From the NCBI RefSeq assembly GCF_000150275.1, contig NW_002060945.1, positions 8,014,011 through 8,078,010 on the forward strand: a DNA stretch of 64,000 bases, written 5' to 3'. Below the pieces are notes generated by a model. That model did not search any database. It was not told the DNA's origin and saw nothing but the letters and a program-made list of their open reading frames with translations. Positions within the stretch are counted from its first letter, which is position 1. Every line of letters begins with the position of its first letter. The DNA comes from Trichoplax adhaerens. Lineage: Eukaryota; Animalia; Placozoa. The translations under genes and the position numbers were made by a program. This document shows positions 33,501 to 49,235 of the stretch, piece by piece.

Positions 33501-34030
33501 AAGATTCCAATCGTAATATTGAAGGTGGGGTATAGCAGCTTTCAGGTCGTATTGGTATGTAGAAGGCTTGATAAATTTTGCCTTACAGAAATTTGGGCGT
33601 TTTACCTGAATGCTTTTAATTCTTCCAGTATTACCGAAATATAAAATATTGTAAGTGCAACCAAATTATGCATGGACATATGCTATATTGATCCAAATAT
33701 CTAATTTAATTAATATATCTGCCAATCAGTCCTGGCAAGGTAGTAGCTAAAAAAGGCTGGCATTAATATTTTGCTACGATGCTAATTCAATCAAACACAG
33801 ATATGTCCAGCTCTCTTAATTCTATCATTATTAAATATTGATGATGTATCTAAATTTAAATGATATTAACTACAAATAAAAATATCGCATGATACGGAAA
33901 ATTATCTAGATACTCCCGCTGTTGACGTAAAATGATAGAAAATATTCTCTGCAGTAACTTTTCACAGTAATATTCTAGAACGATATAATAATAGCTTTAC
34001 CTCGCTTTAATTTCAAGGTATAATTATTCT

Positions 34031-37000
34031 ATGAGTAATTTTTCAACCATGACTGCACATCTAAATTTACCATTCGCAAAAAGTAGCTATCGAAAGGTAG
34101 TTTACGATCATGAAGACTTTCTAATTAAAAATTTACCAACGTATGAAATTATTGAAAAAATGTATACAAACCATCTACTTCAAGAGATCTTTTTCCTCAG
34201 TATCACAAATGTCGAACCTTCTGCGGTGGTTATTGAAAAAAATAAAGAAATTATAAACTTAATCTATGATAAAAATGTCGGTGAATTTTTTCAGTTTTAT
34301 GAGATTCTGGTTAATTTAAACGATAAAACTTGTGGCAGTCTATTGAAGGTCAAGTTAATAGATTTATATCATGGACAATATCAAAATAACCATCTAAAAG
34401 GTAAACATTTTTAAACAGTAAGAAATATCTGTGCTTGTTTTGATAGGCTATTTCCCTTTCGAAGTTAATCTTGTAACATATTTCTTTCCTTATAACATTT
34501 ATTTGGATCAGTAAATTAAATTCCTTACATATACTGCTATACAAATCCATACTTAAAATAATATAGAATATTAATGTAGCCGTGTCTTGTTGTTTCGATT
34601 TTTTTCAAGAAATTTTACTGCTTGTAAAAATCTTTATCTACAGATGACATTGCGATTTATTTTCTGTTTATTTTATCTTTATCTATTAAATATTAGAAAG
34701 ATTAATCTTACTACTTTCTATATTTTCAAAATCGTTGAAACTGTTGTGATAAATTGCTAGAAAGTACATTTTACTCGTGATATGCGCTTTTGAAAATTCT
34801 ATGCAATGTCTTATTGAAATACCATAACCGCTGGTGTGTAAATCTGCAAAAAGTAATCCTAATTGATATTCTTTTGAAAGAGAGTGGTTTAATTCACGAA
34901 TTAAGATACTCTACTAATATCAACCAAGTAGCTTATCAGTGCTTATGATGATTTATCCACAGGCATATTTGATTATTTTAATTATTTCCACCCAATTCAA
35001 GTAATTTTTAGTTTCCGATTTATGTGCAAGCTTTGAAATGCTCGTATAATTGTAACAGATAGTATCTAAGAAAATATTAGCATCAAATACTGGATATTTT
35101 GTATATTCTTGCAATAGTATAAATTTAATATTGGCATTATAGCTATAAAAGTCTTACTACGGTACTTCATGTTATTTTAAATAGATTTGGATTATGGACC
35201 TTCTGTGGAAATTTTACATAAGCAATCGTCATCAACATCTTCCTTTAAGTGTTTTGCAAAAGTGCCCGAAGGTTATTTGAATTCAATAAGTTTTAGAATA
35301 GGATATTTTATTTAATTCTTATCTGATATAATGGATTAAGGGGCGCTGCGCTGCTCTTATAGCTATCTATATTCGATATCGTAGTAATATTGCAAAATGA
35401 GCTTATACATATGAGATCATATTAAATATTTTATTATCAATTCATTATTTGTATTCACGTGCTATTTTTAGAGAAAAGTTATGCTTAGTTTATAGCGATA
35501 ATTCTGAAACAGAATTAGACTATAGTAGTGTAAGGCGTATAAATAATATCGATCTACTATTCTAAAACATAGTATTTTGTATAGGTTACAACATGCGTAT
35601 AGAATAATGAATAGTTTGTGTAATATCATCTTTACCAACTCAAGTTTTGCTATTTTATAGTTATTATCCCTTCATTTTCTTCGACAACCATCACTTATTC
35701 AAAGACTCGTGTTTATATGACCAGCGGTAATTACTCTGGCTTAGAATTACAATTTGCTGCTAATCCTTCCAGTGAGATACGTAATATTAAAGCCGAAGTA
35801 GTTCCAGTTATTCCATCCACACCCGCATCGCTTTCTGCTGCATCATTAGGGATCAGGTTATCAGCCAATGCAAAGTTGGATAGCCATTTAAAAGAGATGA
35901 TCAATATTCGCTTTCAGCTACCGGATTATTATTGCATCAATAAGGAGAATCGAATGTTAAAGCGTTCGTTAGTAATAGTAGGCCAAAAGAGTTCTAAAAA
36001 AGGCAACAATGAATTTATAGACTCCCATCAGGAATGTCGATTAAATCGACATGACGATGGCTTGGTCTCTACTCAAGTACAAGCAACATCTTTTGGTGTC
36101 GTTTGCTGTTTTTGGAAAATACCGCAGTTTATCTTAGATGCTGCTCGTTTAGGTCCGAAATTTTATTATCCCTATTTTATGTATGTAGTAGATTGTCTAG
36201 TCGCCATCCAGCCATGGAATAGTAGTTACGATATACAAGGATTCAATTTATTAATTATCCTTACCAGTCGACAATTAGATGTTACAGCTAAGCTTAAGGA
36301 CTATCAAACTGTTGGTAATTTAAATAAAATCGACTTATGCTGCGGCAAATTTAAGCTTCAAGTTACTGGTAATATCATACCAAATCAGCATGTCTTTTGG
36401 CTTGAAAGTTTAGAAAAAATAGTTTATTTTACGGGTGGTTATACTTGCACTAAAATAGCCTGCGCTTTTGAGACTAATGAAGTTTCTCACCTGGAAGGCA
36501 AAATGACGATATCCTATCTAGGATTACCTGATAATTTGGATGATGCTGATCCACGTCGTAATCGAAGCTTATTCTGTGAAAGGATGCAAGCAGATATCGT
36601 AGTTGAGCTAAAATCGGACCAAAGTAAGTTATTGCTTAACAAAATTAGTATCTTAGATTGTGTAATACATTTCAGTCTCCTGTAAGTATTGATCTATAAT
36701 TAGATCCTCGTATCACAGATGCTCCTAAAGATTTTTACACTTTAGAAAGTAGATGTTTGCTTAGTATTAAAACTTTTCGGAAATCAGGTCATGATATTGT
36801 CTTTGAAGATTTTATTCTATAAATTTTTATATTGATCAACATCAGTAGAGGTATCCCCTATGCCAGTAATTTCACAAACATCAATTATATCTACGTTGTC
36901 AAGTGAAATATCCGCAACAGGTAATTGTAATGTAGATTTAGTTTTATCATTTGTAAAATGAAGTAATTAACTGCGAACCAAAATGGTTATTGCAAATTTA

Positions 37001-40000
37001 TTACACTCTCCCAAGATAAATTTTCGTACATCAATATGCTAACATTGTCTGTATTTCAAGTTTCGCAGCTTTAACTCTGATCTTGTCTTAACATTATCAT
37101 TACAGAATCTATTGCATCGACACAAAGTTCAAAGATAGAGATTGGCATGTTAAAAAGAGGTCAGTAAGATATTGACTTAAGTTGGCAGTCCGAGTATTAG
37201 CGCCAAGACCCACGTTCTTGTAAATCTTTGTATCAACAGTAAAGATTTAATATTAGAGATTTGAAATTGTATCACTTTAAAGTTGTTTCTCATAGCAAGA
37301 GCTGTTCTAACAACGATAGTCTTAACTATATATTACGAACTGTGAGTCTGTTCTATTTATTTTCCTCCATTCAATTATAGAGCTTGAAACATACCACGCG
37401 AACTGTTTACTCATCGAATCACTGATAGAGAATATTGCTAATTTACAGCAATTGCATACGATACTTTCAAGCAATGGAATTGGAGATGATAGTATCGATG
37501 TACTAGAGGCTGGTAAAGATCGTCTACTCTTATATACTAAGCAAGAAACGGTAGAAAAAGTAAGTTACGCTTTAATTTATTAAGCTATCTTCGAAAAGAA
37601 TAGTAATATTGGCCATATTGCGGAGACATTGTTATCAGGAAATTTTATTGAGATTTTCCTATTTTCATGGGGTTTAAAGATTTATCATCCAATATTAAAT
37701 TCTCTGGAACAACGTATCAAAATGCAAAAAGAATCATTTGCGAAATTAGCTTCTTGTCAAGATATGCTTGAAGAGATTATCAATGCCCTACCTCCTCAAA
37801 TTGCCGAATATGTTGCTGCATATTTTCCAAATTACTCACGAGGATTGCCGTATCTACGAAAGCAAGTAAATAGTAGCGATAGCAGCACCATTTTTGTAAC
37901 AGGTATCTACTAATTAAAGAAATTGTTCGATTGATAACTTTTAGCGGTAGTCAACTATAAATATAAAATTATTTTTCTATTTTTAAATCTTCTACATCTT
38001 TATAGGTGATAATCAAGCTGGAAAGAGTACATTAATAAATTTCTTACTAGGCAAAGACATACTAACATCAAGCAATCTCAAATCATATCATAGCTATCAA
38101 TTTCGCTATTCAACAGAAATTTCGGTCGAAATTATTATTAATAAATCTTCTATAAAGAATAGAGAAGTTTTACGTAGACGAAGTTTGGGAGATAGTTTAT
38201 CTACATTTTTGACTGAACAAACCTCTAAAAATTCCGATAAGAAAGAAAAGAAAATCTTTAAAATCTTCTATCCATCCGCTTTGCTAAAGGTAATTTCATG
38301 AAAACATAACACTAATGTACAGTGCAAACGATTGATATTGCGATAGGATACCGTAATGAATCTTCAGTGATCTCGCTAGTTTCTGATCTTTCCAAGAACA
38401 CTTTACCATTGCAAAATACGATGTTTAATAACAATTTAGATCGAATTAATAGACACCAATCTATTTTTAAGCAATCGTAACCTTGATAGTTTTATATTAG
38501 AAACACGTGGATATTATGATATAATCAGGAGTAATGATGGCAATTAATTGATGATCTATTTTGCACTAGAGTGTTAAACCACTTAAGGTTGCAATTCTTG
38601 TCATTACAAGTTAGTAATTTCTCTTGTCCTCGCTGATCACATAATAATGCATGCAAGCATAGCTGAATTGAATATACAGTCTTACGTATAGCTTAATTGA
38701 GAGCTATTGCTAGTTTACCAATGCAAGTTTATAATATATAGAATATATACTTGAACTTTTCTTACAAGTGAGATTATGCATTCTGAAGCTACTGCAGGTC
38801 AGTAACATTTTATTATCAATTATTGCATTTCATAAATTGGTGTACGATACTTTATCAATATAATATTAGAAAACTCCGTTAAAAAATTAGCAATATAGTG
38901 AGATTACAACAATAGCAATTATAATATCCCTTACCTATGAATGCATACTTTACCAAAAGTGAAACAATCATGTTGCTTTGATCAATTGTATACAGATGAT
39001 ACAATATTAGAGGATTCAATTCGGAATATTAATACCATAGTGATATTATAACAAAAGTAATTATAACATTCCTTACTTATTAATTAATACTTTGCCAAAT
39101 TTACAAAATTGAAGCAATCCTGTCGCCTTGACCAACTATACACAGATGATATAATATTAGAAAATTTAATTGGAATATTACCAATATGATATTATAGCAA
39201 AAGTAGTTGCAATATTCCTTACCTATGAATTGGTGTTTTACTAAAACTGAAGCAATCATGTTGCCATCGCCAACTGCACACAAGATTTTTGCCATTGAGT
39301 ACCTATCTATTCCTCTATTTAAGCTAGAATAGTGCAAAATTAGAATACCGTAATTCACCGGTATAGACGAAAAATTTCGAAGGATATTAATCTTTGTGAC
39401 ATTTAGGCTGGTATTACTATAATCGAAGATGATACAGAGTTTACTGGCATTCATGATGAAACTGCAATGTTGATGACAGGAGCTGCGGTAATCATTTACG
39501 TGATTGACTCTGATAAAAGGACGGGAGCACAAATTGATAAAGTAAGTTAAAGTAGACTACTATCGAACTGCTTATATAGATCAGATGGGGAATATCATGT
39601 CAATAAGTAGACAAAAATGTCATTCTTTAAGTCTATCTTAAAATAGGCTTGCCTATACGTCTTATAGACTGCAATTTCATTCTCACTACTATACTTGATA
39701 GCTATGTGAAATAATGAATATAAATTTGGATAACTATTTACACTGTAATCAGGGAAGAATTCGTTTTTTATTCTGATTCTTGTTTGCAACAAGGTTGCAA
39801 AATTTTTAAGAATTGTACGAGATAAAACACCAGATACTCTGGGCTTTCCAGCCGGCTCTATCCTATTCGCTTGTAATAAGTGGGAGGGTGTTGAATTAGA
39901 TGAAAGACCTCATGTAAGCCATCGAATAACTCAAGAAATTAAAGATATCTGGCCACAATTTGATGACTGGCAAATAGCTTGGACTTCCTTCAAAAATGGC

Positions 40001-41450
40001 CTACAGCATTTTAAAGGTGGTTTCGTAGCTTCTGATATGAAAAACTTATTACAAACGATTCAAAAGCAATTGAGCTCTTGTTTTTGGTTCAGATTTGTTA
40101 CCCATATTCGGTATGTCTAAAGTATTAATACGAAATTTTGCCTCAAATGATTCATTTTTGAAAACTATAGCTCGGGTACTAAAGGGATTTTTTCTGTAGT
40201 ATGCTAGACATGTGTTTCTGGATGTAAAACTGACCCATAAATATCATACCTAACTTAATTAATTTTTAGAATTTGCTACATATAAATATACGTATATCCT
40301 ATATTATAATCTACATGGATAATTCCTGTTAAAAAGGGGTTTCATTAATACTTGCTACACGATTTATTTATTTACCTAAAGCAGATGTTTCTATGTAGTG
40401 CATTTAAGCCAGCCTTTATTTTCTTCATTCAGATATTTAGAGCGATTTTTGCGGATGATTCAAATACCATATAAATTTTACTTAAAGAACTGTACCCTTC
40501 CATCCAATCAATTACGCAATCATCTCAAAACTATTAAGCAGGCGCAAGTAAAAATTTTAGCTCATCTACAGACAGCGAACGAAAAAGTCAATCAAATTTT
40601 AGAAGAATTTTACCGAGGTTGGTCTAGCGAATTGACAGAATCGTTGCAGAAGATGATCGATTCAGTAGAATTTGAAAGTGAAATGTCGAGGTGGAATCCG
40701 AAGTGTACAATTTTATACCGAAATACAAATGATACTACAGCAATTCTTAAGAAATTATTAAAAGACCGGATTATGCATTTATTGATCAAGTGGGAAAATG
40801 TAAGCTGTATTTTCAAGGATATGGAATTTGAGACAGAACGCATCATTACCCAACATTACGAATTTCCGCCATTAAGCAGAGATAGAAGTAACAGGTTACT
40901 ACCACTTATTGGGCCATTATTTTTAAATGGAAAATTCAATTTAATTTTTCCTAAAATAGCAGAACAATCATTAAAGGATAAAGATGGTTTATCTATAGCC
41001 AAATTGGCATCGAAACCGCGCATAAATTGCGAATATGTCGATGCACTCTTAACATCCTTAATTGACACTATTCGATTTCCTCCTATCAACTCTGTTTTTA
41101 CTCAGTCATTGATGTCGGTAAGATCCCCGCAATCGATCTTAGCATCACGAAAACAAGGAAATTGTAGTAATATATTACGACAAATAGCCATACAACTTGT
41201 TGATAAACTGCGCAAACAACAATATCATTGTAAGATTATTACTCATTTAATGATTACCTTTCGAAATGATGTAGCTAAATTTCAAGAACAAAACATGATT
41301 CAGATCAACGCATGTAAGAGAGTTTTACAGGAAGCACATCATATATACCGCAATAAAAGTACCGAATTAACAAATAGGCTGGACAGTATTCATAGAATTC
41401 AGGAAGAATTACGTCTTCTCTACGGAACTTATCGGCATTTGTTAAAATGA
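34031..41450 (+). CDS. Multi-exon protein: CARD-like death fold + ZU5/UPA-like region + S/T linker + dynamin/mitofusin/BDLP-like GTPase + helical stalk (approx. exons 34031-34400, 35184-35271, 35661-36623, 36704-36787, 36846-36920, 37105-37163, 37296-37341, 37449-37559, ~37653-37902, 38006-38289, 39407-39541, 39794-40110, 40433-41450)
   Basis: Exon 1 has a CARD-like helix pattern (YRKVVYDHEDFLIKNL...EIIEKMYTNHLL...EKNKEIINLIYDKNVGEFFQFYEIL). The spliced P-loop reads IFVT|GDNQAGKSTLINFLLG, followed by FYPSALLK|AGITII, AVIIYVID, LFACNKWE and a long helical last exon. All junctions chain in frame; the acceptor near 37650-37680 is weak. Confidence 0.7.
38855..39285. repeat. Degenerate tandem repeat, about 3 copies of a ~144-bp unit, inside an intron
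   Basis: ccttac(c/t)tat recurs at about 38929, 39071 and 39217, each followed by tgaa(a/g)caatc(a/c)tgt(t/c)gc. The acagatgat..attag..gatattata.caaaagta block links the copies. Periods are 142 and 146 bp. Confidence 0.85.
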
Positions 41451-47232: not shown

Positions 47233-49235
47233 TTACACTGCATTCGCAGCCAAAGCAGATATCTCTGATAATTTTTCCACAACCTTGTAAAATGAGAGAA
47301 GGAATAAAGAAAATATATTTTTTGTTATCGATGGAACACTATTGGATAATAATATTAGTAAATTATGTATACCTCGTTTATTTCAGGTCGATCATTAGGA
47401 TTGACAACCAATAAGAATTTGATCAAATTTAACAGATGATCAGAGTAGCTATGGTAAAACATTGGATAGATATTTTTTATACGTTTATCTTGAGTCATTG
47501 CATATTTCATTGAATATATGACGTCGAAAAAGCCACGAAAAATTGTGAAATTGATCAAATACCTCGGATTGGGAGGAATTTCATATTTTCCGGACACTAT
47601 GGCAAGCGATAGGCTACCACCTCTTTCGTTAACTTGAAATTCAAACGGTGATTGCAAAAAGGCCATAGAGTATAGTAAACAACCTAGAGACTATGATGAG
47701 CAAAATTCAAATGAGGTGCATCTTTTACAGTTCAAGAGACTGCAGAAGATGAGCAAAGATTACGTCAGCGCCTACTAACCCACACATCTATTTTCTCATC
47801 TATTCCACATACATCGCTGGATATATTGAATAGCTCGGGTGCTCTGTAAGCTATGGTGCACTTTTGAGCGGCTGTGTCCTACAATACGGGTATAGTCAAT
47901 GTTAACATTTTCATTAGAAGGATACCTCTGACCCTATGGTTTTCACTGCGTCTGATAAAAATACCTCCATCTTCATGGCGTCCATATGAGTCTTAATTTC
48001 AATTCGAGCTGCCTCCATAGAGCCAAAGTCCATTAGCATAGGATTGTCATTTTCATCAATTAATATATTACCAGGTTTAATGTCTCTGTGTGCATAAGGT
48101 ATAGCTCTTGATTTGTGTAAATGTTGAACAGCAAGGCAGACATCATAGAATATACGAAATATATAATCTTCGCTGAAGTAACTTTTGGTGGTCGAGGCCT
48201 TGTTAATTATATCATAAAGGTTACCTCCCTACACCAGCAATACATCGGTACAAAAAAATGCGGATTTAAAGATTGACTCTTCAACGTATACTCTATCAAA
48301 ATGAATACTTTATCATGTCATAACACATGAATGCTAGATGATTATGGAACAACTTACCGTCAATAATGGTAGAAGCATTAATATTTCAACAGGCTTTCCC
48401 ACAGACATTGGTCTTATAACCGATGAATCAATAATGCTAATTAAATTGGGATGATTAAACATCTTGTAGAAATCGATTTCTTTCGACGCAGCACGTTCTG
48501 CGCATTTATCATGGCATTTGATCCTCTTCAGGGCAAATTTTTGACCAGTTTCGACATCAACAGCCAAATCGACAAAACTGTAGCCTCTGTTCAAGAACAA
48601 TTATAATTTAATCGGCCATGAATGGAAACTTGTATTATAAACAAGACAGTGGTTGTAGACCTATCGATAGCAATTGCAGTTCAACCTAAACCTTATGATA
48701 AATACACTTTACTGCGATATAATCTCATTTACTTCAGTTTATCAAGTACATTCTAAGTTATAAGAAGTCATCGATTGAATTGAGCTATCCTTTGAGCAGT
48801 GACTAAGTAGCATCCGATGTTATAAAGTGGCAGCGGCAACGTATATTGAGTCATTCGATCAATTTCAAATCGAAGACTAAGCTTGAAAATCATACACAGG
48901 AAACGATAGTAATTAACCTACATCGCCATGTCAAATTGTAGCGTTATTTTCTGCTAATTATCACTTCGACATGAACACTAGCTAGTCATGAATTTGCATC
49001 GTACTACTTGTATAAACACGTAGATATGCAATATTCTGCCGTCAAGTATGTCGATGAAAGATGGGTGATAACGGCCCATCTGGTATCCGACATGATTGAA
49101 TTACAATGGATTATTTCAAGTTTTCTTATATAAGAAACAACAAAATTGATGCAATTACCCTTCTCCTATACGATTTTTGACCCTGACAAGGTGGTTGTTC
49201 ACTTGCAGTCGCCCAGTAGTTTGATAGCATCCCAT
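47233..49235 (-). CDS. STK16: Serine/threonine kinase 16 (NAK family), 7 exons
   Basis: MGC N-terminus (myristoylation/palmitoylation type), IGEG|GYSFVDL, FALKRIKCH, AHRDIKPGN, LMDFGSM, AAQKCTIAYRAPELF, DVW|SLGCLLY and GGSLSLAIVSG. Confidence 0.93.

Follow-up and report, generated by a model that had tools for sequence, protein, structure and literature searches.

A placozoan locus predicted to join a divergent CARD and a ZU5-UPA module to an altered dynamin-like GTPase

The window analysed here is a stretch of 64,000 nucleotides from the genome of Trichoplax adhaerens (contig NW_002060945.1, positions 8,014,011 to 8,078,010), and the locus described occupies positions 34031 to 41450 of its plus strand. 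The window is AT-rich, with a G+C content of about 31%. Four long open reading frames (ORFs) are present on the plus strand of the locus (34031-34414, 35717-36685, 37629-37913 and 40398-41450), as listed in a preliminary description of this DNA, and the motifs quoted there (INIRFQLP, VQATSFGVVCCFW and the P-loop) are found where that description had placed them. It had also joined the ORFs into a chain of 13 exons. An open in-frame chain does exist, but 11 exons sufficed to build it, and the two extra exons were neither found nor excluded. The chain was assembled by reading the three plus-strand frames together with a splice-site scan; it begins with the ATG at 34031 and ends with the stop codon at 41448-41450. 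All of its introns are bounded by GT and AG, there are 0 internal stops, and a local count gives 3705 nt, or 1234 codons plus the stop. The gene stands alone, with no long ORF in the approximately 9 kb 5' of it. The preferred reading, to which a probability of roughly 0.6 is given, is that of one expressed, lineage-restricted placozoan gene of about 7.4 kb, 11 exons and approximately 1234 codons that extends from a CARD to a GTPase. From the N- to the C-terminus the predicted product would carry a divergent CARD, a short linker, a ZU5-UPA module, a Ser/Thr-rich linker and a GTPase module composed of pre-G helices, a G domain and a helical stalk, an order held with the same confidence. The exons are listed in Table 1.

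Table 1. Exons of the gene model, with positions in the window and the evidence for each
Exon	Content	Position	Strand	Evidence
1	Start codon and CARD-like domain (about residues 21-101)	34031..34400	+	RNA contig 34000-34398, splices at 34400
2	Linker mini-exon of 29 codons	35185..35271	+	Both junctions within one X7 contig, GT..AG, in frame
3	ZU5 (about model residues 5-158) and UPA (172-322); 322 residues	35661..36623	+	AF2, Foldseek, VIA; donor AAA/GTAAGT
4	Predicted; Ser/Thr-rich linker, phase 1 to 1	36846..36920	+	Splice-site scan and open frame only
5	Predicted; Ser/Thr-rich linker, phase 1 to 1	37106..37159	+	Splice-site scan and open frame only
6	Opening helical exon of the GTPase module; strong acceptor, no Met	37381..37559	+	Open frame, acceptor phase
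7	Second pre-G helical exon	37680..37902	+	Frame and splice sites; intron position as in paralog A
8	G1 P-loop (GDNQAGKST) and switch I region	38006..38289	+	Dynamin_N, paralog alignment, family profile
9	G3 region, non-canonical EDDTEFTG	39407..39541	+	Donor junction in RNA contig
10	G4 region, NKWE	39794..40110	+	Acceptor from RNA junction; paralog matches E 2e-15 to 4e-11
11	Stop codon and helical stalk without transmembrane hairpin	40433..41450	+	BLASTP to paralog A, orthologs

Domain, homology and fold searches were run exon by exon, and the full chain was checked by script for length and stops. Paralogs were sought in the whole assembly, which comprises 105.6 Mb in 1414 contigs, the contig of the locus measuring 9.66 Mb. 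Among the sequencing runs that hold part of the stretch, only run X7 is recorded as RNA. Runs X4, X5 and X8 cover intron sequence, resemble DNA or unspliced material and are uninformative on splicing. Spliced contigs of run X7 provide three junctions (34400/35185, 35271/35661 and 39541/39794). The first two lie on a single contig and each splits a codon after its first base with the frame kept, so that exons 1, 2 and 3 belong to one in-frame mRNA. The third joins the G3 exon to the G4 exon as modelled. Exon 7 ends after the first base of the P-loop's opening glycine codon (...VTG/DNQAGKS), and an alternative in-frame acceptor of exon 11 at 40382 would add 17 codons to the product. A further X7 contig links 34000-34260 and 35734-35805 on opposite strands and is most likely an assembly chimera.

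Orthologs of exons 1, 3 and 11 with open reading frames were found at 61-68% identity in the same two other sources. These orthologs argue against a pseudogene.

The CARD-like N-terminal domain proposed in the preliminary description is borne out by a profile-profile match. A profile of exon 1 built from three sequences matched the profile of 19 CARDs encoded in this genome with an hhalign probability of 95.8% (E 8e-9) over 78 of the 83 CARD columns, and the single sequence of exon 1 reached 95.3% against the CARD profile. When the true CARDs were left out one at a time they gave values of 87-99.6% with scores of 32-115, a range in which the scores of exon 1 (45-48) are included. The controls were at or below 8%: the reversed exon 1 alignment gave 8% against the CARD profile, 60 column shuffles gave at most 4.9%, the exon 1 profile gave 0.3% against two death domains, and the N-terminal domain of two paralogous genes described below gave 0.5% against the CARD profile. 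The ORF-fragment orthologs of exon 1 (P0005 and P0006) share 61-68% identity with it, and the exon has no paralog in the genome. On this evidence exon 1 very likely encodes a divergent CARD, the fold itself being a prediction.

Exon 3 follows the linker mini-exon and is predicted to encode the ZU5-UPA module. An AlphaFold2 (AF2) model generated from a six-sequence alignment had a predicted local distance difference test (pLDDT) score of 70. The top Foldseek match to this model was the ZU5-ZU5-UPA-DD region of ankyrin-B (4d8o, 8e-7), and further matches included complexes of ankyrin-B and ankyrin-G with spectrin, UNC5b (3g5b, 3e-6) and the NLRP1 FIIND (7crw, 2e-3). VIA-align superimposed the whole model on ankyrin-B 4d8o with a Z of 13.1 over 248 residues and on 3g5b with a Z of 9.1. 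The first half of the model matched ZU5 domains with Z 8-9 (Z 8-8.7 for 3ud2/3kbu) and the second half matched the UPA of rat NLRP1 (7crv_B) with Z 8.6 and a root-mean-square deviation of 3.0. The Pfam ZU5, UPA and FIIND families gave no match to exon 3. The structural matches to ankyrin-B, UNC5b and the NLRP1 FIIND uphold the ZU5-UPA region of the preliminary description, and the model supports two consecutive beta-sandwich domains, ZU5 and then UPA. Orthologs of exon 3 were found as ORF fragments (P0002 and P0003), and the genome contains five paralogs of this exon, comprising two close ones (E 1e-22) and three canonical ZU5-UPA genes. One canonical gene (L004, 1393-2421, minus strand) has kept an HFS motif and gives a marginal Pfam ZU5 match (E 6e-4); another (L006, 199-2346, minus strand) has an RFS motif and a Pfam death domain downstream.

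In the alignment of paralogs, the column at which autocleavage takes place reads SFG in exon 3 and SLG in its orthologs, as against HFS, KFS or RFS in the canonical paralogs. The third-position Ser of HFS/SFS is the nucleophile of FIIND and PIDD self-cleavage and is essential for cleavage (PMC3210808). Self-cleaving FIINDs carry HFS or SFS at the border between ZU5 and UPA, and exon 3 does not. Since the nucleophilic Ser is replaced by Gly, the module is predicted not to self-cleave, and judged by this motif it should be cleavage-deficient. A ZU5-UPA profile made from exon 3 and its two closest paralogs was compared with 1.84 billion representative proteins and matched four in total, namely one SH2-containing paralog, two orthologous fragments and one canonical ZU5-UPA protein. 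From these matches the ZU5-UPA head subfamily looks restricted to placozoans.

The closest relatives of exon 3 belong to a locus on another contig (G000:C1383, about 291.4-302.6 kb, L016:4440 to L021:5560), which encodes the annotated protein P0001 and has a tandem twin at L015. P0001 is a protein of 700 residues with an N-terminal helical domain, a ZU5-UPA-like module in which the cleavage position reads QSV, and an SH2 domain at the C-terminus, and it maps onto the genome exon by exon at 97-100% identity. Its gene and the gene in the window share the same plan, in which the exon of an N-terminal domain is followed by one or more mini-exons, one large ZU5-UPA exon and then effector exons. The effectors differ, being an SH2 domain in P0001 and a GTPase in the window. 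The N-terminal domain of the SH2 paralogs was also considered as a CARD, but this gained no support, as it matches neither the CARD profile (the 0.5% control above) nor exon 1. The genome has a very large death-fold repertoire: in six-frame translation the Pfam death domain has at least 91 matches with an E of 1e-5 or lower, and CARD has at least 24 with an E of 1e-3 or lower. Many of the death-fold matches occur in tandem clusters, such as those on C1398, C1404 and C1392.

Exons 6 to 11 make up the GTPase half. The P-loop exon (exon 8) matches Dynamin_N with an E of 5e-5 and 23.7 bits, and this score is under the cut-off of 27 because one exon holds only part of the domain. Exon 7 gives a faint Pfam hint of the bacterial dynamin-like helical domain (E 0.19), and exon 6 has a weak tblastn match (E 0.18) adjoining the P-loop exon of another paralog. 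Sequence searches of the Protein Data Bank (PDB) with the P-loop exon or the G4 exon alone returned nothing useful. A profile of the P-loop exon family identified the Campylobacter jejuni DLP structure 5owv at 1e-5, followed by mitofusin-2, Synechocystis Slr0869, mitofusin-1 and Nostoc BDLP. The mitofusin/bacterial-dynamin-like G domain named in the preliminary description is supported by the Dynamin_N matches of paralog A and by this profile, the window exon itself scoring under the cut-off.

Paralogs of the G4 exon are located 130-200 kb downstream on the same contig. At least nine matches to P-loop and/or G4 exons of the dynamin-like family, on both strands, fall within G000:C1412:8200000-8279999 (L017-L019 and L022-L026), a cluster spanning 80 kb that lies 122-202 kb past the end of the window. 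One minus-strand member at about 8274.3-8277.9 kb, here called paralog A, carries G3 and G4 motifs of canonical form (DSPG and NKWD) along with a glycine-rich transmembrane hairpin. Its P-loop exon passes the Dynamin_N threshold (1e-13, 52 bits) and its G3 exon matches Dynamin_N positions 102-141. Two introns of the window gene, one between "...G" and the P-loop and one between "...LK" and G3, are at the same places as in paralog A, and exon 11 matches the stalk exon of paralog A by BLASTP (E 5e-8). The GTPase half is thus supported, by sequence and exon layout, as a probable diverged copy of a local family of bacterial-dynamin/mitofusin type. No head exon was found near the paralogous GTPases in the 80 kb examined. 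Because none of them has such an exon nearby, the CARD-ZU5-UPA head is unique to the window copy among these paralogs.

The motifs of the window copy deviate from those of its relatives. The G1 P-loop, GxxxxGK[ST], is kept as GDNQAGKST across the junction of exons 7 and 8. The G3 region reads EDDTEFTG in place of the DSPG of paralog A and departs from the canonical DxxG, the G4 motif is NKWE as against NKWD in all five of the aligned paralogs and so departs from N/TKxD, and switch I has KSY where the paralogs have HTT. In exon 11 a short stretch replaces the glycine-rich transmembrane hairpin of the paralogs, and its maximum 19-residue hydropathy is 1.25, compared with 2.52 and 24 windows of at least 1.6 in the stalk of paralog A; the whole gene model has 0 windows of at least 1.6. 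The two orthologs of exon 11 (P0007 and P0008) are full-length ORFs at 62-64% identity that end at the same stop and likewise lack the hairpin.

Several observations weigh against the preferred reading, and the join between the head and the GTPase is the point that they touch most. No spliced RNA crosses 36.6-38.0 kb among the X7 contigs, which leaves the join between 36623 and 38006 unobserved. Exons 4 and 5 are without RNA or homology support and either can be skipped with the frame kept; in both, an in-frame Met could serve as the start of a distinct GTPase transcript. Public protein sets yielded no model of the locus for exon 1, 3 or 11 in the length ranges searched, and consequently there is no independent annotation of the fusion. 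These observations would suit two adjacent genes on the same strand, a CARD-ZU5-UPA adaptor made of exons 1-3, perhaps ending in a retained intron after 36623 or after exon 4, and a separate soluble dynamin-like (pseudo)GTPase starting at the Met of exon 4 or of exon 5, or else in a 5' exon that escaped detection. The frame of exon 3, if unspliced, continues to a stop at 36683-36685, and the other paralogous GTPases are without such a head nearby. Exon 3, however, ends at a consensus donor (AAA/GTAAGT in the splice-site scan) precisely where ortholog conservation stops: the ORF fragment P0002 tracks the exon up to this donor and then diverges, reaching a stop within 7 codons. In P0001 the corresponding exon is an internal one, ahead of those for the SH2 domain, and the paralogous head always has an effector module after it. 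The frame of exon 6 contains no ATG at all and its strong acceptor matches the phase of the exon 3 donor, whereas in the stand-alone paralog A the exon that resembles exon 6 by eye is the first coding exon and begins with Met. The two halves are only about 750 bases apart with no stop in the spliced frame, which holds with or without exons 4 and 5 because both run from phase 1 to phase 1. The similar divergence of exons 1, 3 and 11 from orthologs in the same two sources was also counted toward one gene. A pair of separate genes is accordingly considered unlikely, if a fair step short of negligible. The single fused protein of the preliminary description is likely, given the open in-frame chain and the three RNA junctions, but its passage from exon 3 to exon 6 rests on inference. 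Splicing of exons 1 to 3 and of exon 9 to exon 10 is seen in RNA, and the join of the ZU5-UPA exon to the GTPase is probably made as modelled from the splice sites. Production of the full CARD-ZU5-UPA-GTPase chain as one polypeptide is likewise likely. The gene is both expressed and conserved, and its single-polypeptide reading is unproven.

The assignments at the two ends of the protein have their own counter-evidence. Even with an E limit of 10, Pfam CARD (PF00619) matched neither exon 1 nor its orthologs, and a six-frame scan of the genome with this family returned 24 places that do not include the exon 1 locus. The AF2 model of exon 1, from a three-sequence alignment, is all-helical with seven helices, but it is unreliable (pLDDT 44), and Foldseek found no match to this low-confidence model. 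The CARD call rests on the profile match. An ESM Atlas search with exon 1 gave no usable match and a PDB sequence search with the exon alone gave nothing useful. Exon 1 could then be some other helical domain whose profile match arises from shared helical composition, all the more as the query profile was built on only three sequences. The match nevertheless extends end to end within the score range of true CARDs, and the reversed, shuffled, death-domain and paralog-head controls all fail, which makes a non-CARD domain improbable. At the other end, the deviating G3, G4 and switch I motifs and the absent hairpin could be read as damage in a decaying duplicate, in which case the GTPase half would be a pseudogene. 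Against decay, its six exons keep about 700 codons open with intact splice sites, exons 9 and 10 are spliced together in RNA, and two other sources conserve the stalk exon at full length, ending at the same stop and likewise lacking the hairpin. A pseudogene is on these grounds highly improbable, and the GTPase half is probably a maintained, soluble, hydrolysis-impaired variant.

No description of a CARD-ZU5-UPA-dynamin-like architecture was found in the literature searched. The preliminary description had stated that no characterised protein with this combination was known to its author. That statement must be qualified, as zebrafish Gbp3 and Gbp4 do join a GTPase, a FIIND (equivalent to ZU5-UPA) and a CARD. 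These proteins have the order GBP GTPase, FIIND, CARD, and the GTPase activity of Gbp4 is needed for inflammasome assembly (PMC4932187). They are the closest known analog, as a dynamin-superfamily GTPase, a ZU5-UPA-type module and a CARD are present in one polypeptide. They differ in that the GTPase comes first and the CARD last, the GTPase belongs to the GBP family and not to the bacterial-dynamin/mitofusin type, and the G3 and G4 motifs of the window protein are non-canonical. The Pfam GBP domains (PF02263 and PF02841) had no match in any window exon. The likeness is taken as convergent and not homologous, given the inverted domain order and the different GTPase family. NLRP1 and CARD8 depend on self-cleavage and carry the CARD at the C-terminus (PMC8679799). 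The window protein resembles their FIIND-CARD region in having a ZU5-UPA fold beside a CARD, and its UPA half matches the rat NLRP1 FIIND; in contrast, its CARD is N-terminal to the ZU5-UPA module and the Ser of SFS is Gly. Release of a UPA-CARD fragment by "functional degradation", as in NLRP1, cannot work with the SFG motif. No NACHT, NB-ARC or LRR domain was matched by Pfam in any window exon, and the statement that the protein plays the role of an NLR may be kept as an analogy only.

The ZU5-UPA-death domain supramodule of ankyrin, UNC5 and PIDD provides the best structural matches, and the same genome has canonical paralogs of it (L004 and L006). The window protein is unlike this supramodule in that its death-fold partner is a CARD that precedes the module and a GTPase follows instead of a death domain. 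For the GTPase, the likeness to C. jejuni DLP1/2, Nostoc BDLP and MFN1/2 consists in their structures being those matched by the P-loop exon family profile. The placozoan GTPase paralogs are closer, with the exon layout and intron positions of paralog A and a homologous stalk exon, and differ from the window copy, which has EDDTEFTG, NKWE and no hairpin and alone carries the CARD-ZU5-UPA head. By domain shuffling, known death-fold and large-GTPase components have been brought together in this gene, and the genome recombines such components freely. A GTPase-kinase fusion as in some paralogs was also considered and was rejected, because the kinase at 47.3-48.6 kb belongs to a separate gene of the minus strand.

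The functional steps are all inferred, and the protein is envisaged as a soluble signalling scaffold. The dynamin-like half would probably bind nucleotide and be a poor hydrolase or none, and it may undergo nucleotide-dependent dimerisation or oligomerisation, or dock on membrane-anchored paralogs. The N-terminal CARD could recruit CARD-bearing caspases or adaptors by homotypic contact. ZU5-UPA clamps the death domain in UNC5b and ankyrin. The uncleavable ZU5-UPA of the window protein may act as an intramolecular clamp, perhaps on the CARD, or as a docking surface, as in supramodules of the UNC5, ankyrin or PIDD type. The membrane-sensing, oligomeric, NLR-like scaffold suggested in the preliminary description would be partly weakened by these features: direct membrane sensing is less likely because the membrane anchor is lost, and regular GTP-driven membrane remodelling is doubtful because G3 and G4 are non-canonical. 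It is conceivable, though rather doubtful, that placozoans independently built an inflammasome- or PIDDosome-like platform with an altered GTPase in place of a NACHT or of the GBP of fish Gbp4. In such a platform, by an analogy that is just as tentative, nucleotide-dependent assembly, possibly on the membrane-anchored paralogs, would gather the CARDs and activate CARD-caspases, and the platform would be a case of convergence with the GBP-FIIND-CARD proteins of teleosts.

If the fusion is true, animals have coupled a large dynamin-type GTPase to a ZU5-UPA and CARD head on at least two occasions, one in the teleost GBPs and one in placozoans, with GTPase families and domain orders that differ between the two cases. 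The gene would then also be a candidate for cell-death or immune signalling coupled to a nucleotide switch without NLRs in a simple animal. As a dynamin-like protein in which the P-loop is kept and the canonical G3 and G4 motifs and the membrane anchor are lost, it would be a natural case for the question of how a pseudo-GTPase turns into a scaffold. Since the locus seems absent from the public protein sets searched, its gene model may be a new one.

Other features of the window surround or interrupt this gene. At positions 38858-39330, in the intron between the P-loop and G3 exons, a repeat unit of about 145 bp is present in three tandem copies that are 64-81% alike. An X7 RNA-library contig (39014-39197) sits on this repeat on the minus strand and perhaps comes from a related copy elsewhere. 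An unrelated gene is located 3' of the locus on the plus strand at 44.5-45.4 kb. The minus-strand protein kinase gene mentioned above occupies positions 47358-48600, bears no relation to the gene described here and encodes a DFG motif as well as a catalytic loop (HRDIKPGN) that is intact.

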